Part shown: one piece after another, positions 276 to 48,900 of the stretch
How positions within the stretch are numbered: the first letter of the stretch is position 1
Layout: each line of letters begins with the position of its first letter
IMG/VR virus record: IMGVR_UViG_3300042473_001540
Span: 186,001 to 250,000 of that record
Length of the DNA stretch: 64,000 bases
Direction: 5' to 3' (one strand)
The notes under the pieces: model-generated
The model's input: the letters and a program-made list of their open reading frames with translations, nothing else
Databases searched by the model: none
Told to the model about the DNA's origin: nothing
Position numbers and translations under genes: made by a program

Positions 276-305
276 AATAGGCGGAAGTTATTTCCGCCTA
301 TTTTT
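276..305. terminator. Intrinsic terminator, probably bidirectional
   Basis: AATAGGCGGAA-gttat-TTCCGCCTATT 11-bp stem followed by TTT, between convergent genes. Confidence 0.8.
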
Positions 306-1223
306 AGCACTTGCAGACATTTTTCTTTTTGACTCGTCAGAATGTTTGAGACCTTGTCTGCTTTCACTGATTTTCTTTTTTGTCTCATCCGAAAGCTTGC
401 GACCTTTGTTATTTTCGCTGATTTTCCTTTTTGTTTCTTCAGATTGAGTTTTACCCTTTTTAATCTCGCTCATTTTCTGTTTTGACAAATCGCTGTGTTT
501 CTTTCCTTTGAACGGGTTAACCATTCCGTTGGTGTAATTCTGCTTGTTTTTTTGACGTGATTTTTCTTTTACTTCTTCGCTGCGCGGAATGCCACGGAGT
601 TTACTGACCTTGCCCATATTGATTTGGGATAATAAGGCTCTAGTTTGCTCGGATACAATACGACCCTTCAATTTAGCTGCGCGTTTAGCCACTAATTCTA
701 GTGGCTGTTTTTTACCTTTCAAAGCTTCTGATCTTTTTCTATTGGACTCCTCTGAGGGAGTTCTGCCTTTGCTACTTTCTCCTATCTTCTTGCAGGTTTC
801 TGGTGAATGTTTTCTGCCTGTCCTGACTTGTGATACCATCTTTCTGCACTTCTCATATAGAGATGCAGTAACAAAATGTGAATTTGTTCGATAACCTACC
901 ATATAATTCAGTGCATAAATCATTTTAGCTTTCGCTGAGTCAGTAGATACTATATAAATCAATAGTTGATGACATAACAAATGTTCTCTTGCTGTGAGGC
1001 GAACTAAATTCGAAGGGTCATTTGAATTTCCTTCAATCCATCCTCTTGTACCCTTCCGATTACGATGTAAAAAGAAAGAGTCAGGGACTATGTGATGTTG
1101 TTCTGTATACCCAACAAGTTGACGAATTCTTGCTGATTCAATTATACTGTAATACCATTGAGTGTATTTGTTGTCTAAATACGGATGGTTGATAGGCAAA
1201 GATACCCTAGGCAATAATTTCAT
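288..1223 (-). CDS. Free-standing HNH homing endonuclease with about 9 NUMOD3 repeats
   Basis: EQHHIVP...SNLVRLTAREHLLCHQLL N-terminus; repeated GxKHSxETKxKISE; AAGGAG RBS supports ATG at 1223. Confidence 0.85.
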   Translation of the reverse strand: MKLLPRVSLPINHPYLDNKYTQWYYSIIESARIRQLVGYTEQHHIVPDSFFLHRNRKGTRGWIEGNSNDPSNLVRLTAREHLLCHQLLIYIVSTDSAKAKMIYALNYMVGYRTNSHFVTASLYEKCRKMVSQVRTGRKHSPETCKKIGESSKGRTPSEESNRKRSEALKGKKQPLELVAKRAAKLKGRIVSEQTRALLSQINMGKVSKLRGIPRSEEVKEKSRQKNKQNYTNGMVNPFKGKKHSDLSKQKMSEIKKGKTQSEETKRKISENNKGRKLSDETKKKISESRQGLKHSDESKRKMSASAKNRRK

Positions 1224-1250
1224 GCTGAATGCTCCTTCATAGCGTTTAGA

Positions 1251-1309
1251 GCGGTCGGAGAGGTTAGAGGCTCGCGGACCGCAATTGTATTTAGTGTCAA
1301 TTTTGACAC
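1251..1309 (-). promoter_or_regulatory. Late promoter TAAATA (1293-1288), downstream GCGGTC/GACCGC hairpin and GTGTCAA-tt-TTGACAC palindrome upstream of the endonuclease
   Basis: Motifs read directly from the sequence. Confidence 0.55.
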
Positions 1310-1337
1310 GTACACACATAATTGTACAAACTCTGCT

Positions 1338-1930: not shown

Positions 1931-2438
1931 TATGTTGAGCTTGGGTTGTGTGGCTTTTGATGAACAGGGCAACAATCTTGACACCTACTATGTGAACTTG
2001 AATCTGTTGCCTGAGGCCAAACCAGACCCCAAAACAATGGATTTCTGGGCACAACATCAAAAATATTATGATGAGACGCGAGTGTGGTGTCAAAGCCCAG
2101 AGGAGGCTATGCCCCATTTCAGTCAGTGGGTGGCAAGTTTTCCTGGTAGTCCAGTGGCAGTGTGCATGCCCAGTGGATTTGACTTCACTTGGGTGTATTA
2201 CTATCTCATGCGTTTCACAGGGAAAAGTGTGTTCAGTTTCAGTGTGTTAGACATGAAGACCATGGCCATGTGCATGCTGCGGCTGCCTTACCGTGAGAGT
2301 GTGAAAAGGAATTGGCCACGACATTGGTTTAGCAAGTTGCCGCACACTCACAACGCTCTTGCAGATTCGCTCGAGCAGGCTGAGACCTTCAAACTCATGC
2401 TGAAGGATTTGATGGGAAGTGATGATGAGAAAGCTTGA
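1860..2438 (+). CDS. DEDDh 3'-5' exonuclease (Rv2179c-like exoribonuclease)
   Basis: SIDIETDG, GFDF and HNALADSLEQ motifs. Confidence 0.85.
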   Translation: MSKKTTAYFSIDIETDGPCPGLNSMLSLGCVAFDEQGNNLDTYYVNLNLLPEAKPDPKTMDFWAQHQKYYDETRVWCQSPEEAMPHFSQWVASFPGSPVAVCMPSGFDFTWVYYYLMRFTGKSVFSFSVLDMKTMAMCMLRLPYRESVKRNWPRHWFSKLPHTHNALADSLEQAETFKLMLKDLMGSDDEKA

Positions 2439-2721
2439 CCGATGGCAGTGCATTGATGCTGGTGGGCACTGGCGCTACCCATTAGCCGACAATTTCCTCA
2501 ACCATCATTTGGAGAACATTTTCCACCAGTATGGTGGTCGCAAAGGGTGGCTACAACACTATTTTCCTGAACTTTGGTGTTGGCTAGAGTTGAATGTGCC
2601 GCATTATGAGTGGGATATAGGCTACAAGATACCTTTTGAAACCCTTGATTTGTTGCTGGTCTATAATGTGAGACCTCTGTTTGAAGCTGCCTGGGAGGAT
2701 CAGATCCTTGACACCGTTTGA
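2419..2721 (+). CDS. Hypothetical protein, PDLYTW-family paralogue 1
   Basis: YPLADN...HYFPELWCWLELN shared with the next two ORFs. Confidence 0.7.
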   Translation: MMMRKLDRWQCIDAGGHWRYPLADNFLNHHLENIFHQYGGRKGWLQHYFPELWCWLELNVPHYEWDIGYKIPFETLDLLLVYNVRPLFEAAWEDQILDTV

Positions 2722-3013
2722 CTACAACCCCCCTTATAGTCGAGGAGATGGTGTGTTTGTGTATCCATTGGCTAACAATCTCACCAAACATGAAAAAGTC
2801 CTGGCTACAAGGAACGCACACTCAAGACTTCTGTTGTTTCAAGAAAATTTCCCTGATCTCTATACCTGGTGTATCTTGAATTTAGATGGTGAAGAGTGGG
2901 ACTTAGTGACTGCCTGGGACACAAGCACCAATTGGCAATTTGAGCTGCTGTTGGGAGAAAGGGCCTTTGAGAGATTTCAAGCTGCTTGGGGAGAAGATGA
3001 TGAGGCAGCTTGA
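2708..3013 (+). CDS. Hypothetical protein, PDLYTW-family paralogue 2
   Basis: YPLANN...ENFPDLYTWCILN; TTG start after GGAGG. Confidence 0.7.
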   Translation: MTPFDYNPPYSRGDGVFVYPLANNLTKHEKVLATRNAHSRLLLFQENFPDLYTWCILNLDGEEWDLVTAWDTSTNWQFELLLGERAFERFQAAWGEDDEAA

Positions 3014-3311
3014 TCCCATTCGTGCCACTCGGCGTTTTGCCAATGGTTTTTTCTATACTCTCTCTGATGATCTTGATGAGAATGAAACAACACAAGTTAC
3101 TAAAGATGAAACTGAGAGAATGCGGTTTTTCCAGACACATTGGCCTGATCTCTACACCTGGCTGATGTTGAACAGTAATGAGGAACACTTGAGTTTGTAT
3201 TACAGAGGGATCTATCCCAATGTGAGTTTTATATTGGCAATCTATTTTGATGATGCACTCTATTTCAACAGTGCATTCAGGAATCGAATAGAGTTTGTAG
3301 ATATACTATAA
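2997..3311 (+). CDS. Hypothetical protein, PDLYTW-family paralogue 3
   Basis: YTLSDD...THWPDLYTWLMLN. Confidence 0.7.
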   Translation: MMRQLDPIRATRRFANGFFYTLSDDLDENETTQVTKDETERMRFFQTHWPDLYTWLMLNSNEEHLSLYYRGIYPNVSFILAIYFDDALYFNSAFRNRIEFVDIL

Positions 3312-3339
3312 ACACCTGATTATACAATTGGGTATTTCC

Positions 3340-3850
3340 TGGTTGGCTCAGAGAACATACTCTCCCTGAGCAAGTCAGGGAGATAAAAGCTTTCCCGGCA
3401 GTACGCAGAGACTGGGTTTTGATGCTGTATGTCTACAGAAGTGGTTACTCGGTACTTCTTGATCCTTGGGGATCCACATCCTATCTCGAACAAAAATTGT
3501 TCAGTAGCGGCAAAAAACTGGAGGAGACCCAATCAACCTCCAGTTTTCCTGATCGTTGTCAATGCACAGACAGAGCGATCCATTTGAACACAGTGCCTCA
3601 CACTGCGAAGATGATTTGAGCCTATTCTGTGACTGGGCTTGTTATTCCGGGTTCGCGCTGGAGAGTTTCTTTGCATAACAGACAGCGGTGCTTCCCGGTC
3701 CGGTGGGCAGAGTTCCACCGACTTGTTTGCGTTCCTGACAGGTCACCTGTCCCTTCCGCCAGCGGATGCCATTTACCGCCATATCAATACTGCTGTTGCT
3801 CATATGTTAAGCTCCAAGGCGCATTCATGCTATCAAAATCACCAACTTTT
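3340..3850. ncRNA. Candidate large structured non-coding RNA of unknown class
   Basis: Largest interval without a credible gene; about 12 hairpins and a multibranch domain at 3673-3800. Confidence 0.55.
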
Positions 3851-3905
3851 CTGTTGACTTGGTAGGAGAGTGTTATATTGTTGAGTCAATGAGAAAGGAC
3901 TCCAA

Positions 3906-4265
3906 TTGAATATAGTGGCCTTATTTTTGTCAGTGTTCTTTTGGTCACAAGTGGCTATAATGGCCATTTGTGTGGGCCTCATGCTTCCCCTGATAATTTG
4001 GTATGAGTGGCGCAAGGGCAACGATCTCACATATGAACAGTTTTTCAAACTGTTGATTTTGTTCTCTGCAATGGGCGCCACCGGACTTGGGTTGGTATTG
4101 TTGGCGCTTATCTTGTGGAAATTTCCACCAGACAGTGTGGAATTGTTGGGCCAATATCAACCCAACAGCATTTACGAGCCAGTTGGCTCTCAAACCCTTA
4201 TGCTGCCAGGCAGCCGGAGTGCCAAAACAATGCGAGCATTGCTTAGCTCAAGTGAGGATTCTTGA
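3906..4265 (+). CDS. Membrane protein with C-terminal GSRSAKT motif
   Basis: Two hydrophobic segments; ends LPGSRSAKTMRALL. Confidence 0.7.
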   Translation: MNIVALFLSVFFWSQVAIMAICVGLMLPLIIWYEWRKGNDLTYEQFFKLLILFSAMGATGLGLVLLALILWKFPPDSVELLGQYQPNSIYEPVGSQTLMLPGSRSAKTMRALLSSSEDS

Positions 4266-4267
4266 AC

Positions 4268-4558
4268 ATGGACGCAGTTATTTTTTGGATAGTAATGTAT
4301 TTTGGAACAGGTTTCTTAGTTGGAGTGATAGGTGGAGCTGTTTCAATTTGGGAAAAATGGCGGCAAGGCGATGATGTACTGCTATGCGATCTCTTTGATC
4401 TCGTTGGGGCAATGATGGTATGCTTGTTCGTATGGCCGGCCGTAATCTGGATGGTGATTGTAGACGTCACAAAAAGCAAGTTCAAAATCAACAAAAACAG
4501 CGTTGTGCTCAAAGGTAGCAGGAGTGCCAAAACCTATCGAGCATTGACTGAGGAATAG
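4268..4558 (+). CDS. Membrane protein with C-terminal GSRSAKT motif (paralogue)
   Basis: Two hydrophobic segments; ends LKGSRSAKTYRAL. Confidence 0.75.
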   Translation: MDAVIFWIVMYFGTGFLVGVIGGAVSIWEKWRQGDDVLLCDLFDLVGAMMVCLFVWPAVIWMVIVDVTKSKFKINKNSVVLKGSRSAKTYRALTEE

Positions 4559-5428: not shown

Positions 5429-6316
5429 ATGCTGCTGCACACATTAGTTGACCGAAAACTCATACACCCGCCCAAGTGGTTGCCCGACAACACTCAATTT
5501 CTGGGCTATGCTGGTAGTGCTGCCTATGGTGTCAGCAACGACACGAGTGACATGGACTGCTTTGGCTTCTGCATCCCGCCCCGTGAGATTGTGTTCCCCT
5601 TCACCGACGGCGGCAGGGTGTATGGCTTTGGCACACAGGAACAGCGGTTTCGAGTGTGGAGCGAGCATCACATTCAGCTGCCGGATCAACGGAAAGAGTT
5701 GGACTTTTCTATTTATAATATCGTTGATTTTATGCAACTGGCGATGGAAAATAATCCAAATGTTTTGGACGTTCTCTTTCTTCCCCGCCGCTGCATTCTC
5801 CACAGCACCAAAATCGCAGAGCATGTGAGAGAGCATAGGAAAGAGTTCCTCCACAAAGGAGCTATGGGAAAACTTCGGGGATACGCATTTTCACAAATTT
5901 CAAAAATTCGCAACAAAACCAACAGCAGCAATCCCAAAAGAGCTGCCACTATTGCTGAACACGGATGGGATCTGAAGTTTGGAGTGCATGTAGTGAGGCT
6001 CATGCTGCAATGCGAGCAGATCCTGGTAGAGCATGACCTTGACATTGAGCGCAACAGCGAGGTGCTCAAGAGCATTCGGCGAGGTGAGTGGACACTAGAG
6101 CAGCTGGACAGTTGGTTTGATGTCAAGGAAAAATCTCTAGAGACACTACATGCCAACAGCACGTTGCGAGATAAGCCAGATGAGAAGAGGATCAAACATC
6201 TACTTCTTGACTGTTTGTCAATGCACTATGGCCCTCTCACCACCGGTGTCAAGCGAGAAACTGGTGTTGATCAACTGGTAAATGAGCTGCAAACTGTGCT
6301 GGATAGATATCGATAA
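5429..6316 (+). CDS. Pol-beta superfamily nucleotidyltransferase (RlaP/Nuc-transf-like)
   Basis: GSAAYGVSNDTSDMD (GS...DxD); NNPNVLDVLF; HVVRLM. Confidence 0.8.
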   Translation: MLLHTLVDRKLIHPPKWLPDNTQFLGYAGSAAYGVSNDTSDMDCFGFCIPPREIVFPFTDGGRVYGFGTQEQRFRVWSEHHIQLPDQRKELDFSIYNIVDFMQLAMENNPNVLDVLFLPRRCILHSTKIAEHVREHRKEFLHKGAMGKLRGYAFSQISKIRNKTNSSNPKRAATIAEHGWDLKFGVHVVRLMLQCEQILVEHDLDIERNSEVLKSIRRGEWTLEQLDSWFDVKEKSLETLHANSTLRDKPDEKRIKHLLLDCLSMHYGPLTTGVKRETGVDQLVNELQTVLDRYR

Positions 6317-7464: not shown

Positions 7465-7467
7465 CCG

Positions 7468-7725
7468 GTGAGGAAGCTCACTCCAGATACTGCGGTGAAC
7501 CGCCGGCAATTTCCCTACTTTGTGCGAGTCGTCAACGTGAGTAATTTTTCGCACTACACGGAAATTTGCAGCTGGACTAAACAGCGTTGGGGCTCACCAA
7601 GTAGACTCCACAAAGACGCATTGTGGGCATGTCAGATTGAAACAAGCACTGCTGGAGAGCAGGAGATGTGGATTTGGTTCCGGCATGAAGATGACATGGT
7701 GCTGTTCTCTCTCACTTGGTGCTAG
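7468..7725 (+). CDS. LTW-family small protein
   Basis: Ends WFRHEDDMVLFSLTWC. Confidence 0.8.
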   Translation: MRKLTPDTAVNRRQFPYFVRVVNVSNFSHYTEICSWTKQRWGSPSRLHKDALWACQIETSTAGEQEMWIWFRHEDDMVLFSLTWC

Positions 7726-7731
7726 GGCAAC

Positions 7732-7941
7732 ATGACAGACGTTGAAAGAGAACTAATCAACCTTGGGTTTGATATCCTCAAAGGCTGGCACAGTTGTCGA
7801 CTGAGCAGTCCGTTGCCTGATCAAAAATCCGTTTACAACTGGCTCAACACTACAGATGGCGGACGCTATTGGGTTGGTGTCATCTCCATTTATTTTGAAC
7901 GAGAAGAAGACATGATCCTGTTCCAGCTCACATGGTGTTGA
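7732..7941 (+). CDS. LTW-family small protein
   Basis: Ends YFEREEDMILFQLTWC. Confidence 0.8.
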   Translation: MTDVERELINLGFDILKGWHSCRLSSPLPDQKSVYNWLNTTDGGRYWVGVISIYFEREEDMILFQLTWC

Positions 7942-7957
7942 TTGGTAGGAAGAATAA

Positions 7958-8179
7958 ATGATCGATATTGATCAACAATACCCCAGCGACTACCACACTA
8001 ACCACACTAAAATCCAGGAATGGCATAGCTGTTCTATTCGCCAATTTGTTGGGCCTGATCGACATACCATCCTCCAGTGGCTCAAAACAACAGATGGTGG
8101 CCGCTTTTGGGAGGGCGGAACTCGAGTATGGTTTGAGAGAGAAGAAGACATGATCTTGTTCACGCTCACGTGGTCATAG
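7958..8179 (+). CDS. LTW-family small protein
   Basis: Ends WFEREEDMILFTLTWS. Confidence 0.8.
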   Translation: MIDIDQQYPSDYHTNHTKIQEWHSCSIRQFVGPDRHTILQWLKTTDGGRFWEGGTRVWFEREEDMILFTLTWS

Positions 8180-8182
8180 CCC

Positions 8183-8413
8183 GTGCACGATATCGACAAC
8201 GACTATCTCGCCAAAGGTCACAACCAGAGACGTGACTACAGCATGCTGGACCAATGGCATCTCTGCCAAGTGAATTTCTCCGCCGTTAACGGAGACAAGA
8301 TGTTTAGTTGGCTTGACGCAGCACCTGGGGAACGGTATTATTGGACACGAGCTGGTAACATTTGGTTTGAGAGGGAAGAAGACATGCTCTTGTTCAAGCT
8401 CACATGGTGTTGA
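8183..8413 (+). CDS. LTW-family small protein
   Basis: Ends WFEREEDMLLFKLTWC. Confidence 0.8.
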   Translation: MHDIDNDYLAKGHNQRRDYSMLDQWHLCQVNFSAVNGDKMFSWLDAAPGERYYWTRAGNIWFEREEDMLLFKLTWC

Positions 8414-8512
8414 GGGATGCAAGCCGGCAAAGTGTCAGAGCATGGCACGCTTTTGCTCCCTGTTGCCATTCAAAGACGTGATAGTGATCAGCTGTTTCCA
8501 TCGTGCATAAAG

Positions 8513-8563
8513 CCTTGTTTGCTGTCAAACAAGGGTTGACACCCTGCCTAAATCTGCTATACT
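8513..8563 (+). promoter_or_regulatory. Hairpin abutting an early promoter
   Basis: CCTTGTTTG-ctgt-CAAACAAGG then TTGACA-N16-TATACT. Confidence 0.75.
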
Positions 8564-8590
8564 CACCACACAAGGAAAGAGGACAAGTTG

Positions 8591-11107: not shown

Positions 11108-11214
11108 GATTGAGGTATGTGTTTTGAGCATGCCTGTCTGGTAGCTATGCAACTTGTTGATCGCATAAATCTAGTGTAAATATTGCAGTGCAACATAGAG
11201 AAAGAGAGAAAGCA

Positions 11215-11394
11215 ATGTTTACTACACTTATCCGCGCTATTTTTGGCGACGTTTCAACCCACAACAGCAACATGAACCTGCGTTGGTCCAGCAACACTGA
11301 ACTAGCCAATTATTTCCGCGCAGAGTACAAGGAAAATGCTCCAGAAGCATATGACTACTTCATGTGCACAGGCAAGGGCAACTTTGCTGGCTGA
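11215..11394 (+). CDS. Small late protein
   Basis: TAAATA at 11177 and its own terminator. Confidence 0.55.
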   Translation: MFTTLIRAIFGDVSTHNSNMNLRWSSNTELANYFRAEYKENAPEAYDYFMCTGKGNFAG

Positions 11395-11420
11395 GTGCTA
11401 GCCCACATCTAAGATAGTGC

Positions 11421-11448
11421 AAAAAGCCCGGTGTATTCCGGGCTTTTT
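11421..11448 (+). terminator. Intrinsic terminator
   Basis: AAAAAGCCCG-gtgtattc-CGGGCTTTTT, followed by TTGACA at 11451. Confidence 0.85.
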
Positions 11449-11492
11449 CCTTGACATCGTAAGCAGCTATTTGGTAGTGTGATTACACTGGC

Positions 11493-11693
11493 ATGACACT
11501 TTCTCATTGTTACAACACACGGCTAATCAGGATGAGTATTCAAGAAGCCAACAGTCGTATCTGTTGGTGTGCTGATAATTTTGGTGACCGGGATATCAAG
11601 TGGACTGTGCGATGCCACGACAGAAGTCGTTATGAATGGTGGTTTACAAATAAGGATGATTTAATTTGGTTTGGCCTTGTTTGGGAAAGTTGA
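11493..11693 (+). CDS. LTW-family small protein
   Basis: Ends WWFTNKDDLIWFGLVWES. Confidence 0.7.
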   Translation: MTLSHCYNTRLIRMSIQEANSRICWCADNFGDRDIKWTVRCHDRSRYEWWFTNKDDLIWFGLVWES

Positions 11694-16519: not shown

Positions 16520-17731
16520 ATGAGCAAGTTCAGTTGCCCTGTGGTGCGTGTGGCCGCAGTCGAAGAACATCCGAATGCGGATCGCCTTTCTCTTGTGCGC
16601 CTTGAAGGCCTCGGTTATCTCTGCATCGCAAACAAACTAGAGGATGGTAGCCCGCGCTACAAGCCCGGTGACTGGGTCGTATACATTCCCTCAGCCTCGG
16701 TGCTGCCTGAATGGCTGCTCAAGGACATGGGATTTTGGAACGAAGACGCTGGTAAGGGTGTGCTGGCAGGCAGTGATGGCAACCGTGTGAAGCCACTCAA
16801 GCTGCGTGGTATTTTCAGCGAAGGTGTGCTGTATGGGCTCATTGCATATGGTGATGACGATTGCCTTTCTGCTGATTTTGGGTCGGCGACGGATGTACAT
16901 GTAGTAGGCAAAGACAGTCTTGAATATCCAGTCAAGCTAGGCGAGGATGCTGCTGCAATCTTGGGCATCACCAGGTGGGAGCCGCCCATTCCCGCTGCGA
17001 TGTCTGGTGAAGTTGCCAGTGTTGCTGAGGCTGCTCTTACCTACGATTTTCAGCGTTGGGAGAGCGTGCCTGACATCTTCGAACCTGGTGAGGTGGTGGT
17101 GGCCCAAGAAAAAATTCATGGATCTTGTACCATCATCCAGTACTTCCCAGGCATGGACCATCCCGAGATGTTCCCCGACCATGCAGGCTACCGCAGCATC
17201 ACTGTCAGCAGCAAGGGACTAGGCGGTCAGGGTTTGGTGTTCAAGAACAACGAAGCCAACGCCAACAACCTCTATGTGCGGGCACTTGGCACACTGCTAG
17301 CCGACCATGACCTCGCCGGGCTCCTCCACAGGATGAGCAAGGTGGACGGCGGTGCTCATCCGGTGGCTATCCTGGGAGAAGTTTTCGGCAAGGGCGTGCA
17401 GGACCTCGACTACGGCACCACTAAGCCCACGTTCCGGGTGTTCGACATGCGGATCGGGCGGGAGTGGCTAAGTCCCGATGCCGTGGCCTACTGGGCAAAG
17501 GACCTGCCCTGTGTACCTACCCTCTACACTGGCCCCTTTGACCAAACTGCCATTGAGGCTGTGAGAGACGGTGTCACAACGGTGGGTGGCACCAATGTGC
17601 GGGAAGGTGTGGTGGTGCGCAGCCTGGTTCCCACCGAGCATCCCCTGCACGGTAGGAAAATCTGCAAATTCATCTCTCCGGCGTATCTGCTCCGCCGAGT
17701 GAAGAACGGCGAGGCAACGGAGTTCAACTGA
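16520..17731 (+). CDS. RNA ligase, DRB0094/Rnl2-like family with N-terminal OB-like domain
   Basis: VEEHPNADRL, motif I EKIHGS, GEVFG, FRVFD, REGVVV, KICKFIS; promoter TTGACA-N17-TAATGT at 16460. Confidence 0.88.
   Translation: MSKFSCPVVRVAAVEEHPNADRLSLVRLEGLGYLCIANKLEDGSPRYKPGDWVVYIPSASVLPEWLLKDMGFWNEDAGKGVLAGSDGNRVKPLKLRGIFSEGVLYGLIAYGDDDCLSADFGSATDVHVVGKDSLEYPVKLGEDAAAILGITRWEPPIPAAMSGEVASVAEAALTYDFQRWESVPDIFEPGEVVVAQEKIHGSCTIIQYFPGMDHPEMFPDHAGYRSITVSSKGLGGQGLVFKNNEANANNLYVRALGTLLADHDLAGLLHRMSKVDGGAHPVAILGEVFGKGVQDLDYGTTKPTFRVFDMRIGREWLSPDAVAYWAKDLPCVPTLYTGPFDQTAIEAVRDGVTTVGGTNVREGVVVRSLVPTEHPLHGRKICKFISPAYLLRRVKNGEATEFN
17636..17731 (+). repeat. Copy 1 of the RNA ligase 3'-end direct repeat
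   Basis: Encodes EHPLHGRKICKFISPAYLLRRVKNGEATEFN*. Confidence 0.9.
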
Positions 17732-24456: not shown

Positions 24457-25674
24457 ATGCACTACACGTTTCCCGAGATCACGCACCTGGATCAAGTGCT
24501 GGAAGCTGTCCAGGGTGTGGAAGGCTTCATTGTAGCCCAGCGGCCCTGGGGCACTGTGGTCAACTACATTCAGATGGGCCCGGACATGTTCCCCGAGGTC
24601 CATACTGCTGGAGGCAGCGCCAGCATGCGCGAGCGGCAGACTCGACTCAAGGCTATCCGCCGGGAGTGTAGGGGGCTGCTGTTCAGCCTTGATGGAAAGT
24701 TGGTGAGCCGCGCATTTCAGAAGTTTTGGAACGTGGGCGAACGGCGCGAGACTTTGATTGAAAACATCGATCTCACTCAGCCACACATCATCCTTGAGAA
24801 GTTGGATGGAAGTATGATTCGTGCTCTACCTCTAGGTAAGGGCTACTGTCTTGCAACCAAGATGGGGCCCACTGCTGTAGCAGCACAGGTTGAGCCGTTC
24901 GTGGCAACTCGAGACAACTATGACCGATTTATCCGAGACACACTGGAGCAGGGATACACTGCCTGTTTCGAGTGGTGTACTCGTCAACAAAAGATTGTGT
25001 GTGATTATCCAGTTGATCGACTGGTGCTGACTGCTGTGCGTCACATCAACTCGGGTGAGTATCTCACCTACTCTCAGATGCAGGAACTGGCGGCCGAGTA
25101 TGAGCTGGATCTAGTCAAGGCCTATCCTGGTACTGTGGCTAGCATGGAGCAGCTCGTTCGGGAGACGCATGAGCTGGAAGGCGAGGAGGGGTGGATCATC
25201 CGGTGGGATGATGGACATATGGCCAAGTTGAAATCGGCCTGGTATGTGCGTATCCACCGTGCCAAGGATGCTCTCACGCAGGAGAAGAACCTCATCGACC
25301 TCATGCTGGCGGAAAAGCTGGACGACGTCAAGAGCTTTCTGCCTGTGGAGGACCTGGCTCGCATCGACGCCTACGAGAACGCCTTCTGGACGGGTGTGGG
25401 GCAAACTGCCTACATATGGAAGGACCAGTATGTCAAGCTCCGGCGGCAGTTTGGTGACGATAGAAAGCGGTTTGCACTGGAGGCAGCACCGGGTCTTGAG
25501 CCCAACCTGCGTAGTGCTGTGTTCAAGGTCTGGGCCCGTGAGGGCCACGTGGACTGGCGTGAGCTGGTGTGCGATGTGATCCGCAAATGCACTGGCACGC
25601 AGACCCGGGTGGACGAGGCACGCTCACTGTTCCGTGCGCCGCGGTGGAGCCAGCAAAGTGTGGGAGACGAATGA
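24457..25674 (+). CDS. T4 Rnl1/RnlA-like RNA ligase
   Basis: ECRGLLF, RAFQKFWN, motif I EKLDGS, FEWC, EGWII, KLKSAWY. Confidence 0.9.
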   Translation: MHYTFPEITHLDQVLEAVQGVEGFIVAQRPWGTVVNYIQMGPDMFPEVHTAGGSASMRERQTRLKAIRRECRGLLFSLDGKLVSRAFQKFWNVGERRETLIENIDLTQPHIILEKLDGSMIRALPLGKGYCLATKMGPTAVAAQVEPFVATRDNYDRFIRDTLEQGYTACFEWCTRQQKIVCDYPVDRLVLTAVRHINSGEYLTYSQMQELAAEYELDLVKAYPGTVASMEQLVRETHELEGEEGWIIRWDDGHMAKLKSAWYVRIHRAKDALTQEKNLIDLMLAEKLDDVKSFLPVEDLARIDAYENAFWTGVGQTAYIWKDQYVKLRRQFGDDRKRFALEAAPGLEPNLRSAVFKVWAREGHVDWRELVCDVIRKCTGTQTRVDEARSLFRAPRWSQQSVGDE

Positions 25675-26338: not shown

Positions 26339-26585
26339 TGCATATGTTGTGACAGTGATGGCTTACTCACTTGAAGAATTTATCCCAGTTTACAACTGGT
26401 GCTGCCGCATGTGGGGCGATACAAGCTTGTATCAGACTTGGTGTATGGGTTGGGCTAATTCAGATCTTTTGCGTGGAGTATATGTTTGCGATTGGGCTTT
26501 TCAACACAAGGATGATCTCATCATGTTTTTACTGACTTGGGGTCATTTGGTTGACTCTAGCCAAGAGGCAGAAAGTTGTGAATGA
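26331..26585 (+). CDS. LTW-family protein (TWxHLV subtype)
   Basis: AFQHKDDLIMFLLTWGHLVDS. Confidence 0.8.
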   Translation: MSDAYVVTVMAYSLEEFIPVYNWCCRMWGDTSLYQTWCMGWANSDLLRGVYVCDWAFQHKDDLIMFLLTWGHLVDSSQEAESCE

Positions 26586-26854
26586 CAAGTTCAAGATAAC
26601 ATTGAGTGCCCACACAAAGGGAGAACTCGAAGCTGTGAATCTATGGTGCCAACAGTTGTGGCCAGGTGAGTGCGGGACAGTATGGGACAGCGGATGGCCA
26701 CTACCTACAACTTTTTTTTAGAGCAGGTGGCATCACTGCGTGGCGTTGCAGTTGGTGGTTGACACGCAGGGAAGATCATGCTATGTTCCTGTTGACATGG
26801 GCACATTTGGTAGAGCCGCCCCAGAATTACACAAGGTATCCTCAAAGTGAATAA
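26578..26854 (+). pseudogene. LTW-family gene split by a +1 frameshift at T8 (26712-26719)
   Basis: Frame 0 reads MNDKFKITLSAH...PTTFF*; the +1 frame continues RAGG...REDHAMFLLTWAHLVE. Confidence 0.75.
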
Positions 26855-26866
26855 GGACAACAAACG

Positions 26867-27723: not shown

Positions 27724-27980
27724 CAGCACTCCTACTCACCATCGCACTGGTCACAGGACTATGCTATCTGGTCAGCTTGTATCTGTCATTGTGGGTTGGT
27801 GTGTTTATGATCCTATGGATACTGTTCAGCATCGGCTGGTTTTTCCGAACCTGGGCAGTCAAGGACAAGGATGGCCCGGAAACCATGTTTGATCGGATAG
27901 TGATCTCAAGCATAATACCAGTTGCCATGCTGTTTGGATTTTTGAATAATCTCCTACAAAAAAGGTTGGGATTGCCCTGA
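27711..27980 (+). CDS. Membrane protein
   Basis: Three hydrophobic segments. Confidence 0.65.
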   Translation: MEQVTALLLTIALVTGLCYLVSLYLSLWVGVFMILWILFSIGWFFRTWAVKDKDGPETMFDRIVISSIIPVAMLFGFLNNLLQKRLGLP

Positions 27981-28249
27981 TGAAATCAGATATTATCAAT
28001 CGCCTCACAGATCAAGCTGATGAGCATGCCAGTGACTATGTTGGCAGTCTACGCCAGCGTGGTCTTCAAGTGCTGCCCGAATACTACGAGCAAGCGTTCA
28101 GGAATAAGTTTGCTGAACTGATTGTGAGAGAATGTGCTGACATTGTGGACCGGATGGATGAGGGTCGCAATGAATACTTCCAGCGACTGGACGGGACCAA
28201 GGTCGTCACCGGAGACGTATTGAAACACTATTTTGGTATCCGGGAATAA
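27980..28249 (+). CDS. Hypothetical protein
   Basis: KFAELIVRECADIV pattern common in small phage proteins. Confidence 0.7.
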   Translation: MKSDIINRLTDQADEHASDYVGSLRQRGLQVLPEYYEQAFRNKFAELIVRECADIVDRMDEGRNEYFQRLDGTKVVTGDVLKHYFGIRE

Positions 28250-30264: not shown

Positions 30265-30467
30265 TACCCAAGTTCAGTTTCCTGCATCGTGTGGAATATC
30301 GGGATCTGCCCGAAGACCCGAGAGTTATGAACTATGGAGAATCTCGCACACAAATGATCATATGGTGCTGGAAAAATCTTCCTTTGAGCGATTGGTCGCA
30401 TGACCCCTTGGGTATTGATTTCAAGCATCAAGAAGGTCTCATGCAGTTTATGTTAACGTGGACATGA
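30255..30467 (+). CDS. LTW-family protein
   Basis: Ends DFKHQEGLMQFMLTWT. Confidence 0.8.
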   Translation: MDIIPKFSFLHRVEYRDLPEDPRVMNYGESRTQMIIWCWKNLPLSDWSHDPLGIDFKHQEGLMQFMLTWT

Positions 30468-30685
30468 TTGTTACCAAGTGCTTGCCCGGCGGTGGATGGT
30501 ATGCCGAAGTCATGCTGGACGATAGTGAATGGCCACCAATTGATGAAAATGACCAATGGTTAGACAGACCCATTCGACGTTGGGTAAGAGAACACACTGA
30601 GGGAGCACATTTTTTCAGTTTTAGGGGAACAATACTGTTCAGTAACGAAAGTGATCTCACAGCGTTTGTGGTCTCTTGGTCATAA
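30458..30685 (+). CDS. LTW-family protein
   Basis: Ends LFSNESDLTAFVVSWS. Confidence 0.75.
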   Translation: MDMIVTKCLPGGGWYAEVMLDDSEWPPIDENDQWLDRPIRRWVREHTEGAHFFSFRGTILFSNESDLTAFVVSWS

Positions 30686-30693
30686 CACGTAGA

Positions 30694-30933
30694 GTGGCCC
30701 GCTTTTTGGAAAAGGAGAAGGATCCTCTCTACCCTTATCCGGTTGTGTTTGACAACATGGAAGTCTCTGAGGCTGAAATACTTCGAGCCTGGCTAAGACA
30801 GCATGGTGGCCGAGAAAACGAGGATTGGGCTTGGACTCATGGATGGTGGGGAGATACCGTTCACTGTTTTAGGTTTCGAGATCCTTGCACAGCAGAGTTT
30901 TTCCGCTTGACTTGGCACCCAACAAGCGTATAG
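30694..30933 (+). CDS. LTW-family protein
   Basis: FRFRDPCTAEFFRLTWH. Confidence 0.75.
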   Translation: MARFLEKEKDPLYPYPVVFDNMEVSEAEILRAWLRQHGGRENEDWAWTHGWWGDTVHCFRFRDPCTAEFFRLTWHPTSV

Positions 30934-36180: not shown

Positions 36181-37413
36181 ATGAAAAAGTTATCCTTACA
36201 TAGTATAGTAGTTTTGATTGGTCCCACTAAGAGTGGCAAAAGCACATGGGCCCAAAACCAGTTTGACGCTGATGAAATCATAAGCCTTTCTTCAATCAAG
36301 AAAGAGTTGACAGGCAACAATTCAACAGTGGATATTTTGCCAAATATTTGGCACGAACTCTATCGTAGAGTTGATATTCGTATCGCCAACGGGCAACGTG
36401 CAGTAGTTGATTCCACTAATCTAAAAGACAAGGACAGATTTACTTTTCTTGATATTGCCGAAAAGTATGGTGTGGAAGTCTATTACAAACCTTTTGACCT
36501 TGAATGGGGCACAATACAGCAAAACTCTGGTTCTTGTTATGACTTTGACTCTTTGAGAAAAAGCTATAGTATATGGAAAAATGCTCGCACACAGGTGTTA
36601 CAGGGCGATAATAAACGAGCTGTTGTGCTGTGTGGTGACGAAACCACTGTTGGATTTCCAAATGAATTGCAGAGTGCAAGGATTTTAGCAGTAGGCGATG
36701 TTCATGGCAATTTTCCAGCTATGCAGCAGGCAGTGCAAATGGCACAACAGTTACACGCAAAGCTAGTGTGGCTGGGAGATATTGTGGACTATGGCGCCAA
36801 TAATCTCAAATGTTTGAAACTTGCATATGACACTGTTCGAGACGGGCAAGCACTTATGATTTGGGGAAATCACGAAAGAAAAATTGATCGCTGGATTAGG
36901 AGCGACTTGGGTGAAACCTTTAATGGCAAACTTAGCGAGTCAAATCTATCTACTATAAGAGAAATCAACAGTTTGAATGACTTGCGGAAAAAGAAGTTTC
37001 TTGCAGCTTGGACAGCACTAAGAAACTGGAGTTTTAACCACCTAACAGTGGGAAAATTTTTGTTTACTCATGGTGCAGCAACACCTGCCATGTGGGCCAA
37101 CAAGGATCGCAGATTGCAAGGTGTTTGTGCAAATATGGCCTATTTTGGTGAGGTAGACACTGTTTCACCGACCAAGAATGATGGATATCCAAACCGTATC
37201 TGGAATTGGGTTCAAAACATACCTGCTGATCATACTGTTGTTGTAGGGCATGATTGGCTTGATCGTGTCAGTTACAACGTTGTGGAAAAAGCAAATTCTT
37301 GTGGCGGCCGGGCATTTGTTACAGATTGTGGTAGCAGCAAAGGCGGTCGTTTGGGTGCACTTTTTGTTGATCAACATAGCAAAGAAGTTTTGCCTTACTA
37401 TTTTGACACTTAA
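36181..37413 (+). CDS. Polynucleotide kinase-phosphatase-like (P-loop kinase plus metallophosphoesterase)
   Basis: GPTKSGKS, VVDSTN; GDVHG, GDIVDYG, GNHE; promoter TTGACA-N16-TATAGT at 36148. Confidence 0.85.
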   Translation: MKKLSLHSIVVLIGPTKSGKSTWAQNQFDADEIISLSSIKKELTGNNSTVDILPNIWHELYRRVDIRIANGQRAVVDSTNLKDKDRFTFLDIAEKYGVEVYYKPFDLEWGTIQQNSGSCYDFDSLRKSYSIWKNARTQVLQGDNKRAVVLCGDETTVGFPNELQSARILAVGDVHGNFPAMQQAVQMAQQLHAKLVWLGDIVDYGANNLKCLKLAYDTVRDGQALMIWGNHERKIDRWIRSDLGETFNGKLSESNLSTIREINSLNDLRKKKFLAAWTALRNWSFNHLTVGKFLFTHGAATPAMWANKDRRLQGVCANMAYFGEVDTVSPTKNDGYPNRIWNWVQNIPADHTVVVGHDWLDRVSYNVVEKANSCGGRAFVTDCGSSKGGRLGALFVDQHSKEVLPYYFDT

Positions 37414-42992: not shown

Positions 42993-45900
42993 TTATGCTG
43001 GTATCGACCCAGGTTGTGACAACAAAAATTGAGCTTGGTAAGTGCTGCTATATTGTAGCCCTAGTCCACCATAAGGCCACTGATACCCACCTGGGATAAC
43101 TTGCCGCACACTACCATCTCGCACTACGCTGGTAGTTGGGTGAGACATAGCTGTTGTTTTCCAGTCTTGTTTGAAGATTATAAGTCCAATATTTTTATTG
43201 CCTGCAGGAGGTGGTTCAAAAATTGGAGCCAATGTCTGAGAGGGGAATTGCAGATAAAATCCAGGGGCTGCATTTGAGGGGTTGCTTACTAGCATCCAAT
43301 CGTTTTGGAGCTTGCCATCCACAATAACATACGCATTTACCATTCCTGCTTGCCATTCTCCTGCGTTTGTAATAGTTACAGGATACAAATCACTGTTGCC
43401 TGTGCTACTCCAATACTGTGCCACAAATTTATCACTAATGCCGCCAGGTGTTCCCAGTGTGCCACGATTGATTTTTCTCAAAACAGCTTGGTTAGGAAAT
43501 GCAGTTGAGGCCGCAGGAGCTTTGTCAAAATATTCAATTCTTTCACCCTCAATCCAAATAACCCCAGGTCGTTTGTCATCAGGTTCAAGAAGAGTGTCGC
43601 CATTTGCTACAAAAATTTCCTGATCATTCCAGTTCAACACCTGAGTAAGAACGGTCCTGTCCTGATTCCCAAGGCGTAGGTATTGTGTGTCGTTATACAC
43701 ATTTGTCACAGCACGGAATGCAACACCATCTTTGCTGGGCAACGCTGTGGGATAATAGGCTTGAATCTCATCAGCTGCTGTCAAAGTGTAATGATTTCCT
43801 AACTTTAGGTACCAACTGTTTCCGGTTTTGACTATGGTATAGTCTAAAATCCAGCTTAAGCTACTGCCGTTGAGCCATACTTGCACACTTTGGAACTCCA
43901 ACGGAGTATTGGTGAATAGGTATTGGTTGCTGGAATCACCTGTCCAGACATCGTTATAAAAGGCACTTGCGCTGTCTTCACCCCAAGTTCTTACAACAAT
44001 AGTATCGCCGTCAACCACCGCCCAACTTGCCAAAAGTAGGTTTGTTCCTTGGATTTGATAATCATAGTTTTGGGCGACTGGATCAGCCACTTCAATGTAA
44101 ATGAAACTTTTATCTGATGGCGCTGTAGTGAATATTATTTGATTTCCAGCCAATGTATATTCTGTGTTAGGCAATACTGAGGCATTTAACCAAACTTGAA
44201 TAAATGACCCAGGATCTGGGAAAATAGCCAAATTATATGCTGTTGTGTTGTTGTCACCAATTGCACTCAAAAGGTAGGGTGGCTTCAATCGCTTGCCGTT
44301 ACTGTAGACCAGTGCATTGTTACTTTGTGCAGGATTGAATCCGCTCAAGGGATTATTTGGTGTATTCAAATTCAGCGGATACGTGAGCAATGGCAAGGTT
44401 ACTACCAAACTCTGTAATTTTTGTAGACTTTGATATTGACTGCTGTATACCAAAATTACAATAGTGTCGCCAGGCAAAGGTGTAAATCCCAGTCCAATTT
44501 GACGATTGTCGGCAGGGTTTACACCAAAACTCACTGTAGGCACTCCATTCCAAGTCATCAGAATAGTGTTAGCGCCTATGGGTTGATCCATTGTGATCAC
44601 AAAACTTGTGATGTCAAAAACAACAGTTTTAGTTTCTTGAATATGGCTGGAATAGTTAGCAATGCTGAACCCTGTGCCAGTACCAGGTGCTCCACCACTT
44701 ATGGTTACACCCACTTGTTGGAGGCCAACATTCTTATTCAAATAACTACCACGAGTCAACGGCAAGATGCTGGCTACTCCCCATTGTGGAGTAATCAACC
44801 CTCCTATACCTGTTCCATTTGTATACCATTCATTTTGACTTATGCTGGGCTGAGTATAATAGCCTTGATTTACAATACTCACAGCAGTAATTTGTCCAGC
44901 TACACCACCAAAAGCAGTAGTGCTGTCAACCTTGATTACCAAAGTTTGCGTTCCGCTCCCGTATTTGAAATACAAGAGATCTCCTACCTTGTAGCCAGAT
45001 CCTGGCTGATTTACATTTACAGCAGTTGCACGTATTGCAGTGACTAACACTGTTGTAGATGTGTAGCTCTGTGATGTATCACTTAACACGATAGTATCGT
45101 TCAAGTTGTAATCAATTCCTTGATTTACTATGCTCCAATTTCCGAGACCAGGGGTTGCTCCACCAAAACCAAAGCTGGTAATTACAACTGATCCCACTGG
45201 CGGGAAAACAAAAACAATGCTATTGCTGCTGGGATCATATACATAATCAGAGGTTGGTCCTAGAGTTTTCAAAATTCCGCCTACACTGACAATAATGTCA
45301 GCAGCACTGAACACTGGTTGGCCAATATAAAATCTATCAGTAATGCTGTCGCCAAGCCAACTTTCAGACAACACATTCCCAAAGCCCACTGTGGGTTGAT
45401 TGGCAACATCTATTATCAAGGTTTCTTTTCCTTGAAGCGGGAACAACTCTTCAGGATGATTGCCTTCCACATGTGGTCGACTCAACCCCTGTCCATCATA
45501 TACAGCATCAAGCGTGCCTCCTAGGGCACTTTCAAATGTGCTGCCTGCTTCTGCTACCCAAATGTTGGGTTTGGCTACAGCACTAAGTGGCGCCAGTGCA
45601 AATTCAAGACTTGTGCCGCCCCAACGTAGGACAAAGGTGGCATTTACGCCTGAACCGCCAGAGGCTTGCACTGCTGTTCCACTGGGAGTCAGTGTGTATG
45701 CCCCTGGAAAGACCACCTCAATTTTCAAAATTGCACCTGTCAAACTTGTGTTGACTACTTTCAGCTGAGCAGGAATAGTATAAGTGCCTCCAGATACAGA
45801 GAGTATATCATTTACACTATATCCTAATCCTTGATTAGCAACATCCACAGCAGTTATCCAGTTTTTGACTGTCCAATTGAGAGGAGTGTTTTGAAGATTA

Positions 45901-48900
45901 CCATTTACCCAAACACGCAAGTCATTTGGAGCTTGTGGGGCCTGAGGCAGGGCAAACTTTGTTTGCAGCCCGTCCCCTTTGAATACCCAATATTGTGGCC
46001 TTGCTCCACCATTTATGTATTGATCAAATAACCGATCAACTTCTTGGCTAGTGTTGTCCCAGCCCAATACGCCATCCCACACTGGCTCGCCCCAACGACC
46101 ATTTAGATTGAAATCCAAACCATCCAACACTGTTCCTTTGGGAGCACATCCACTGATCAGTAAGGGATCATTTGGAGGAGGCATGCTAGGAGTGGGCTGA
46201 TACAACTGTTGAATTCTGTCTGCTGCTCCGTTATCCAGTTGATATCCAACCAATTCAAATATGCCTTGATTGAACACAAACAAACTCCAAAGCCCAATGT
46301 TGTCGTAAATTACTTTGATTATTTCTCCATTAGGCAAGTTTGTCAGAGCTTTCATTTCTTCGATAGTGTCAATAAACCTATTTGGCACAGTATTCTCGCT
46401 GTATCCAGGACTGTAATAGTCTTCTGCGGGCACACACGCCAGTCGGTCCAACACAATTTTTGTCCTTGTGCTGCGTACACTGAGGTTTGCTATATCAAAT
46501 ACAGTCACAGTAACAATATCTCCAACACCTGGTGTGAAGTTGAGTTCAACGAGAGTGCTGTCGTCTAAATTTATCTCATAATCATTAGTTAATAAGTTGT
46601 TCCATCGAACTTGTGTAAATTGCCAAGTTATGGGATTTGTCATGCTTACTATTTGAGAAATGCCGTCACCAATAAATGTCTTACGCTCAAGATAGCTAGA
46701 TGCGTATACATACGCCTGCACAACATCGTTAGTGTTAGGCACAAAGACCAAATCAATTATTGAGTTGTCTCCAGGACGCAAATTCCAAGCTTGAGAAAGC
46801 TTGCTATTCCAGTATACCAAAACATTTTCAGGTTTGGTGCTAGTGCTTAGTTGAAGAGATTTGGTTGATCCGTTACCAGTTAAGGTCACTGTTTCAATCA
46901 ATGCACCACTGCTGGCTTTGTAGTTGTCGTACCACGGCTTGTATATGGTATCTCCGGACAAAATCGCAAGATCAACTGGGTTACTGACATTCAAGATTGA
47001 AACATTATTGTTCAGGTCAATATAGGGAGGGTTATCCAAATCGCTGCTGTTGCTTTCCCAATAGTCCGAGACCACTCTGTAATCCACAAATTGGCGTATG
47101 ACAACGTGGTAGGGTTTAACCTCTTGAATATATTTTTCCAAGCTGTCTATTTTACTTGGGTCATAATAGGCTGAACTCAAGAGTTGTTGGCTGAAACCTT
47201 TCAAATTGATAAAGCTTGTTTTGAAACACCAATCTACGAAATTTTGTTCAGCCAGCACATGGCTCACTAGCTCAAAAAATACCATGTTACGTTCATTTAC
47301 ATCACTGTCAACTTTCAAAAGTCCCACAGCTTTGTTGTTTTCAGGCCACAATCCCTGCAAAATATAGCTCAATTCTAGGCGTGTATCATACTCCCAACCT
47401 TGATAATCAACTGCATAACTTCCTCCACTGAAGCCCATGCTGTACTTTTCGTAGTCATAGAGATTGTCACTGAGTTGTAGATTGCCGTTTTGTACACCTA
47501 CTACGGTCCATAAGGTTTCAGAATCAGGCGTGTATTCAAAAAGATTCCAACGGCCATTGCCTGTATTCAACACTTTGACCAAAGTTCCAGAGTCAACCAC
47601 AAGAGTGTCACGGTCAGCCAAAGTGGCAACAGTAGCCCCAATCAGGGTGTCGGCACTGATGCCGCTGGCATACCAATCTACCAAGTACCAAACTTGGTTA
47701 GTGTCCCATGCTTGCATACGCTCTAATGAAAACTGGTTTTGTCCTTGATAAAGCCAAATGGTCCAGCGGTTGTTGGTGGCAGCACTTACATCTACCAAAA
47801 CTTTGTTACCAGGTATTAGGCTGGGAATCAAAGCATCTCTTGCCGCCAAAGTAGCTACGTAATAATCCCAATTGCAGGGCAATATGCCTTTTACTGGCCG
47901 TACAATTTGCCACTCTAGGGGATCAATTCCCAATTTCAAAATGTTCTTGTTGTTTTGAATATAGGTTGTTGGCAATAGCTGTGATGCACCTTCCAAAACC
48001 AACACTTGTGCATCTATTAGGTTGTCATCTATGCTGTCAAAATCTGCAGACCTCATCAAGATCCATGGATTGTTGAGCGAGCCAATGTCCACTACATCAT
48101 AAATTCCATTTTGATTAGGTGTTTGTGTGACAATAGAGCTGGTAAGAGTAACTGGATTTTGATTTTTAACAATTATTCGGTCTCCCAAATTTACTGTTAT
48201 ACCATCAACAACCAATGCACTATAAGATGAGCCATTATAGGTTAAGGTAGCACCCTTGCCATTTTCCCCAGGATAGTAAACAGTGTCTAGAGCAGTTGTG
48301 GTTGCCACTCGAGCATTGGCTTTGGTATTTTTTTGGAGAGGCTGTGGCTCTACGCTCTGAAAATACTGTAACCAGCCAAGCCTGTCAGGGTCATCCAATG
48401 GCGGCACACTGCTGCTGCTAAGGAGGCTGTTGATTTTTTTAACAAAAGCTCTCCTAGCAGTAATACCATCCTTGAACCAACTTTGTGAAGGTCGTGTCAG
48501 CATGCCATACTTGCTCATTTCAGGCAGTCGCAAATTGGGAACACTGTTGCCTACGTTGTTGAATTCCACAAGACTATCACACATTTTGCTCCACAAATCT
48601 AGTGTAGGTGTGCTCAAAGGATCGTTGGGTCTCAACAATGTCCACTCTTTGTAGATTTTATCTACATTTTCTCTACTTGTATAATTCACTTGCCAGACAG
48701 TGTTGTTTTCATCCAAGAAACTGCCAATGTTTGCTAACAATGCGCCTGTGCTGCTGATTGCGGCCCACCAGCTTTGGTTTTGTGTTTGTGGACTTTCAAC
48801 AATTTGACTCAAAGATGCAACACTTATCTTGCGATCTGGCACGTTGGGCACTGTGGTTTTGTTTTTTACCCAAAAGTAATAGGCATTTGTGTATTGGCCG

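Follow-up and report, generated by a model that had tools for sequence, protein, structure and literature searches.

A candidate gene for a large, highly structured non-coding RNA in T4-like jumbo phages of freshwater lakes

We analysed a stretch of 64,000 nucleotides of the IMG/VR virus record IMGVR_UViG_3300042473_001540 (hereafter the window), in which a 594-base gap between genes was found to contain a sharply bounded element of about 463 nt. The element is kept far more strictly than the genes around it and folds into about thirteen hairpins, ten of which are kept by compensatory substitutions in relatives. It looks like a previously undescribed large non-coding RNA of giant lake phages, present in two diverged copies per genome, although the strand on which it would be encoded could not be resolved and its function is unknown. 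The main inference of the preliminary description of this locus, which had proposed an unannotated structured phage RNA of 300-500 nt with unresolved strand, is thus supported. The coordinates of the element, its parts and its surroundings are given in Table 1.

Table 1. Features of the element and its surroundings (window coordinates; copy 1 is the copy in the window, L045 is a third lineage found in another phage contig)
Position	Strand	Feature	Observations
3335-3797		Whole conserved element, candidate non-coding RNA gene	Homology to relatives starts at 3334/3335 and ends at 3793-3797, while the flanks become unrelated or much more diverged
3361-3383		Hairpin H1, 9 bp, variable loop	UCUCCCUGA/UCAGGGAGA changes to UCUCCCCAA/UUGGGGAG in the second paralogue
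3425-3438		Hairpin H3	CUGUA/UACAG, UCAC/GUGA, UUUGG/CCAAA and GAUC/GAUC in different lineages
3437-3459		Hairpin H_A, covarying stem and conserved 11-nt loop GGUUNCUCGGU (3443-3453)	AGAAG/CUUCU, GAGAG/CUCUC, CUGG/CCAG and GCAAG/CUUGC; four of six pairs compensated
3461-3474		Variable hairpin H4	Absent in the second paralogue
3485-3504		Hairpin H5 (GAAC/GUUC core)	Stem identical in all 12 sequences
3503-3508		Candidate pseudoknot partner of the H_A loop (3444-3449)	Positions 3447 and 3505 covary as A-U, G-C and U-A in the three groups, flanked by five invariant complementary pairs
3514-3547		Hairpin H6, perfect 11-bp stem	GGAGG/CCUCC, CAAGG/CCUUG and GUUGAACAG/CUGUUUCAAC; full A/U tracts (A6 and U4, U6 on minus) only in copy 1
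3551-3580		Hairpin H7, two stacked stems with a conserved 3' bulge	GAUCG/CGAUC changes to GGUUG/CAACC; UGUC/GACA changes to UGAG/CUCA and UCAC/GUGA; 98.3% of cells paired
3589-3607		Hairpin H8 (stem 3591-3605)	CAGUG/CACUG, CAAUG/CAUUG, GCGAUG/CAUCGC and CAAAUG/CAUUUG; GAUG/CAUC in an RNA-library contig
3618-3640		Hairpin H9	GAGCC/GGCUU, GGGCC/GGCCU, CAACC/GGUUG and GUGCCC/GGGCAC
3643-3665		Invariant block UAUUCCGGGYUCGCRCUGGAGAG, containing hairpin 3646-3662	Identical in all three lineages; served as the search pattern that found the paralogue; an alternative long-range pairing CCGGG(3647)/CCCGG(3694) is possible
3682-3699		Invariant block CAGCGGUGCUUCCCGGU	
3701-3720		Hairpin H11	Three of six pairs compensated (GGUGG/CCACC, GGCA/UGCC, GGCG/CGCC); L045 has GCUG/CAGC
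3724-3736		Block identical in all lineages	
3737-3751		Hairpin H12	GACAGG/CCUGUC changes to GAUGG/CCAUC
3751-3760		Block identical in all lineages	
3762-3779		Hairpin H13 (GCGG/CCGC; 3762-3765/3776-3779)	GUGG/CCAC in the paralogue and CCAGC/GCUGG in L045; three compensated pairs; 100% of cells paired
3804-3809	-	-10-like box (TAACAT on minus) just outside the right border	A TAnnnT-type hexamer sits 18-22 nt (30 nt in L045, which has an insertion) upstream, in minus sense, of the conserved AUAUGG in every lineage; forms TACAAT, TAAAAT, TATAAT, CATAAT and, more weakly, CAAAAT
3854-3881	+	Sigma-70-like promoter of the downstream membrane-protein gene (3906-4265)	TTGACT-N16-TATTGT; relatives have similar boxes there
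288-1319	-	Free-standing HNH-type homing endonuclease with four NUMOD3 repeats	On the strand opposite to its neighbours; relatives L011 and L020 carry a different 379-aa minus-strand ORF at the corresponding place
1860-2438, 5429-6316, 16520-17731, 24457-25674, 36181-37413		Dense set of RNA-repair and RNA-processing genes	Rv2179c-like 3'-5' exoribonuclease, RlaP nucleotidyltransferase, two RNA ligases (one T4 RnlA-like) and a polynucleotide kinase-phosphatase-like protein
2419-3311 and 3906-4558		Tandem arrays of fast-evolving paralogues flanking the element	Upstream, three small (about 100 aa) proteins sharing an FP(D/E)L(Y/W)(T/C)W motif, in a copy number that differs between relatives; downstream, two small membrane proteins ending in GSRSAKT.RAL; neither has a Pfam match
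7465-8587, 11108-11643, 26339-26866, 27730-28227, 30265-30860		Other stretches without any ORF of 90 aa or more	Contain shorter ORFs
42993-55046	-	Single 4017-aa ORF	Next to a 1126-aa baseplate wedge protein and a 603-aa tail-fibre-like protein

The window is part of a 133.7-kb IMG/VR virus record. Near-identical contigs reach 310-329 kb and are rated about 77% complete, so the genome is about 420 kb, and its baseplate and tail-fibre matches are T4-like. All DNA runs in which the sequence was found are lake-water metagenomes. Between the stop codon (TAA) at 3309-3311 and the next start at 3906, no ORF of 90 aa or more was found in the interval 3312-3905, and the short ORFs inside it are not conserved. 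The interval had been described as the only large gene-free one; this is not strictly true, since five to six other stretches of the window lack ORFs of that size. The GC content is highest at the element (0.50-0.54).

In the next step, we collected homologues. Searches with the flanking proteins and a scan with a 25-base pattern gave related contigs from viral and metagenome collections, including contigs whose flanks are unrelated at the DNA level. Gene order is nevertheless the same everywhere: the exoribonuclease, three to five small paralogous proteins, the element, two membrane paralogues, a 199-aa protein and RlaP. The element is 85-91% identical in these contigs, against 67-78% nucleotide and 26-55% amino-acid identity for its immediate neighbours, and its core, 3480-3740, is about 97% identical where coding flanks are about 78% identical, which indicates purifying selection on the nucleotide sequence stronger than that on the neighbouring proteins. 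One- and two-base indels occur throughout and no frame is open in all members, so the element is not coding. Interestingly, gene callers had called spurious ORFs in some members, and protein database searches with these frames recovered five more contigs (two of the three searches gave new loci, the third only re-found known ones), showing that spurious ORF calls in protein databases can be used to recover homologues of a non-coding element.

A 22-base invariant motif then revealed a second, diverged copy in the same phage contigs, 74.6% identical over 3547-3790, about 106 kb away and in the opposite orientation, as well as the third lineage, L045. A covariance model of the 3' part found exactly two copies in the 328-kb contig, one in each smaller fragment, and none in a complete 195-kb distant relative, in which no copy was found by BLAST either. 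A blastn search of a phage GenBank collection gave no match, and two invariant-motif patterns (20 and 27 specified bases) found nothing new among viral contigs, one of them also nothing among genome contigs. A 20-base degenerate pattern hit nine high-GC bacteria, but the covariance model scores these at 11 bits or not at all, so they are chance hits. A 732-nt ENA contig (L028) matches the second paralogue almost exactly in its left two thirds and copy 1 at its 3' end, with the junction falling inside hairpin H11 and breaking one pair; this is either recombination between the two paralogues or an assembly chimera.

To examine the secondary structure, we first compared folding energies with those of dinucleotide shuffles. 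The folding was only modestly better than in the shuffles, with z = -2.79 on plus and -1.30 on minus for 3312-3905, and z = -1.97 on plus and -1.26 on minus for 3510-3797. Energy alone would therefore not make the case, and it is conservation and covariation that show this to be more than chance. Eleven of the twelve hairpins of the preliminary description exist. Nine of them covary across the three lineages, as does one hairpin not listed there (H3), whereas the stems 3488-3502 and 3646-3662 never vary and so could not be assessed by covariation. In the 5' part, 59 pairs were tested, with 90.8% of cells paired versus 81.5% in shuffles and 30 pairs changed on both sides versus 15.7; none of 500 shuffles reached the observed values, and registers slid by 1-3 columns paired in 35-43% of cells. 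In the 3' part the values were 98.7% versus 92.9%, with seven doubly changed pairs versus 3.3, and again 0 of 500. Over both parts, slid controls paired in 32-51% of cells against 91-99% observed. In addition, chimeric hairpins made from the 5' arm of one member and the 3' arm of another fold about 2-4 kcal/mol worse than cognate ones in all 11 hairpins tested. It should be noted that only about seven distinct sequence types in three lineages were found, so the covariation rests on few independent events.

Three features of the preliminary description, which had proposed a multi-way junction, were not supported. The hairpin 3755-3766 is broken in L045, the enclosing GCGGT(3685)/ACCGC(3775) helix is broken in the second paralogue (ACCAC), and the outer GC(AT)AACAG/CTGTTGC helix lies in non-conserved sequence; H13 covaries instead. 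The 11-bp stem followed by U6 had been described as looking like a terminator on minus. This hairpin scores as a terminator in copy 1 only; in the paralogue and L045 the stem sequence changes, with no U-tract on plus and only a short UUUG on minus, and it is therefore mainly a structural hairpin and not a family-wide terminator. No clean terminator was seen on either strand across lineages.

Between the variable hairpins lie the blocks that are identical in all lineages, together with the H_A loop, which is the pattern of a conserved tertiary core with variable peripheral stems. A covariation scan for tertiary pairs was swamped by lineage structure, and only the pair 3447/3505 had supporting neighbours. 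Since three-state matches of this kind also arise by chance in such a small set, the pseudoknot between the H_A loop and 3503-3508 remains a candidate.

No Rfam 15 family (including GOLLD, ROOL, OLE, HEARO, raiA, group I and II introns, RNase P, tmRNA, 6S, SRP and riboswitches) matched at the gathering threshold in the whole window, and at E <= 10 only chance-level snoRNA/miRNA-type hits (E >= 0.6, 14-17 bits) were obtained for the window element, the paralogue and L045. ARAGORN found no tRNA or tmRNA genes in the window or in six related loci. No TROVE match, indicative of a Ro (Rsr) protein of the kind that accompanies Y RNA, was found in the 328-kb and 310-kb contigs (which are about 77% complete), although control genomes do match, and no RVT_1 match, as expected for the reverse transcriptase of a retron, DRT or DGR, was found in these two contigs or among the neighbours. 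A large survey of candidate structured RNAs in IMG/VR reports motifs averaging 67 nt and so does not describe this RNA as a unit (PMC10690425).

The nearest analogues in kind are GOLLD and ROOL, phage-borne ornate RNAs of unknown function that form cages (10.1101/2024.12.08.627333); the element is not a member of either. Like the element, GOLLD is a large, multi-hairpin RNA encoded by phages and found in lake metagenomes, with one part universally conserved and the other less so; here the 3' part (plus sense) is nearly invariant and the 5' part more diverged. However, the element does not match its Rfam model, is about 460 nt against more than 800 nt, has no tRNA genes nearby and occurs as two paralogues per genome. 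ROOL is a phage- or prophage-encoded large structured RNA with pseudoknots and no known protein partner; it differs in hosts and habitat, its Rfam model does not match, and the element is not near tRNA islands. ORF-less group I introns of T4-like phages share the size range, the many hairpins, a conserved core with variable peripheral stems and T4-like hosts, but the element lies between genes, without exon-joining frames and without a hit to the Rfam group I model.

With respect to transcription, two freshwater metatranscriptome libraries contain short contigs of relatives covering 3338-3547, 3543-3782, 3576-3780 and 3637-3783, and one more distant variant has a compensated H8, whereas nothing aligned with the flanks at 80% similarity or more. 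No RNA run was listed for a 2.8-kb query. In one of the libraries (run X22), a contig aligned with 3546-3586 shares only the core hairpin H7, which is followed by GAUG-CAUCA-CAUC in place of CAGUG-CCUCA-CACUG, and has a different upstream hairpin; it is probably a fourth, more distant lineage of the RNA. These contigs carry no strand and could be due to DNA carry-over, and the flanks of relatives are too diverged to serve as a control, so this is a hint of expression and not proof. The element nevertheless behaves as its own unit. Its plus sense runs with the neighbours in copy 1 but against them in the paralogue and in L045, and the next gene has its own promoter-like site directly after the element in all three.

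The evidence on the strand was divided. In favour of minus, the -10-type hexamer is conserved outside the right border, with full promoter matches in the paralogue (TTGTTA-N16-TATAAT) and in L045 (TTGAAA-N18-CATAAT); invariant unpaired positions are A- and purine-rich on minus, especially in 3643-3786; and internal A-C mismatches on plus become G-U on minus in H8 and in H1 of the member L010. In favour of plus, the per-sequence minimum folding energy is lower in 10 of 11 members, by about 3 kcal/mol, there are more G-U cells (44 against 28, but from few independent events), the candidate pseudoknot contains a U-G pair, and one RNA-library contig continues 44 nt past 3782, beyond the minus-sense -10 box. 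Consensus-fold (alifold) energies were -126.7 on plus and -130.6 on minus, near-equal also when rerun with all lineages, and summed hairpin energies were -78.9 versus -80.6. We consider the two strands about equally likely. That neither is clearly favoured is unusual for an RNA and leaves room for a role at the DNA level.

Taken together, we consider it likely, in the absence of direct strand-specific transcript evidence, that 3335-3797 is a stand-alone gene for a trans-acting, highly structured RNA of a family not yet described. We infer that it is transcribed from its own promoter, that the invariant junction blocks form a tertiary core that binds a partner or catalyses a reaction, and that the variable peripheral hairpins act as scaffolding. 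It probably works as a stable RNA or RNA-protein particle, or as a ribozyme, during infection, and it may be tied to the unusually rich RNA-repair and RNA-modification gene set of the phage. Both copies lie among RNA-metabolism genes: the exoribonuclease and RlaP for copy 1, and, for copy 2, a PhoH-like ATPase cluster and a SpoU-family RNA 2'-O-methyltransferase gene, between which it is located (3262-4050 and 6626-7255 of L041, the contig with the neighbourhood of the second paralogue). This is suggestive but may be coincidence.

Other explanations remain possible but appear unlikely. The element could represent two convergent small RNA genes sharing hairpin 3514-3547 as a bidirectional terminator, the right one (about 285 nt) running on minus from a promoter at 3804-3835 and the left one (about 190 nt) on plus. 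The terminator-like form of the hairpin in copy 1, the -10 box at the right border, the restriction of A- and purine-rich unpaired invariant positions on minus to the right part and one RNA library (X19) that contains only the right part would agree with this. On the other hand, the other two lineages do not keep the full flanking tracts, both halves always occur together with the same spacing, and the candidate pseudoknot and other wobble pairs in the right part favour plus. Slightly less likely is a DNA-level element, such as a replication origin, a recombination or packaging site or a protein-binding array, with hairpins formed in single-stranded or extruded DNA; the preliminary description had offered a structured origin or regulatory locus as its alternative. 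The near equality of energies, compensated pairs and hairpin sums on both strands and the two distant copies in opposite orientation are compatible with this reading, and T4-type phages probably use several origins. However, T4 origins appear to consist of a promoter plus an unwinding element and not of ornate hairpin arrays, both G-T and A-C states persist in helices, there are long invariant unpaired blocks and about 13 distinct hairpins, ten of them covarying, no repeated binding-site motif or AT-rich unwinding region was seen, and the element is present in RNA libraries.

A cis-acting leader or 3' UTR (riboswitch, attenuator or mRNA-stability element) of a neighbouring gene is similarly doubtful. 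The minus sense points towards downstream genes in the paralogue and in L045, and the plus sense follows a gene array in copy 1, but the neighbouring genes differ between the three lineages, the orientation relative to them flips, the downstream genes have their own promoters, about 460 nt is far larger than known leaders, and no riboswitch model matches. Finally, a decayed or very unusual protein-coding gene, or a remnant of a mobile element or intron, is very unlikely, a coding gene or an intron being effectively excluded. Although some members have an open frame of 122-162 codons on plus and a homing-endonuclease gene lies 2 kb away, the frames are broken differently in each member while the nucleotide sequence stays 85-97% identical, the element is not inside any gene (the upstream gene ends 24 nt before it), synteny is the same in all relatives, and no group I or group II model matched even at E <= 10.

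Bacterial and phage RNAs above about 400 nt with elaborate conserved structure are rare, and historically they have turned out to be ribozymes, ribonucleoprotein cores or, recently, RNA-only cages. It is about as likely as not that the element represents a new class of large, ornate phage RNA comparable in rank to GOLLD and ROOL, in which a conserved tertiary core of about 460 nt would act as a ribozyme or as a self-assembling or protein-recruiting particle, and in which the two diverged paralogues might work as a pair; it may take part in the RNA damage and repair contest between jumbo phages and their hosts. A new family of this kind, confined to giant T4-like lake phages, duplicated within the genome and located among RNA ligase, kinase-phosphatase, exoribonuclease, nucleotidyltransferase and RNA methylase genes, would be a direct target for structure determination and for tests of catalysis or assembly, and could also reveal a new RNA-based step in phage takeover or counter-defence.
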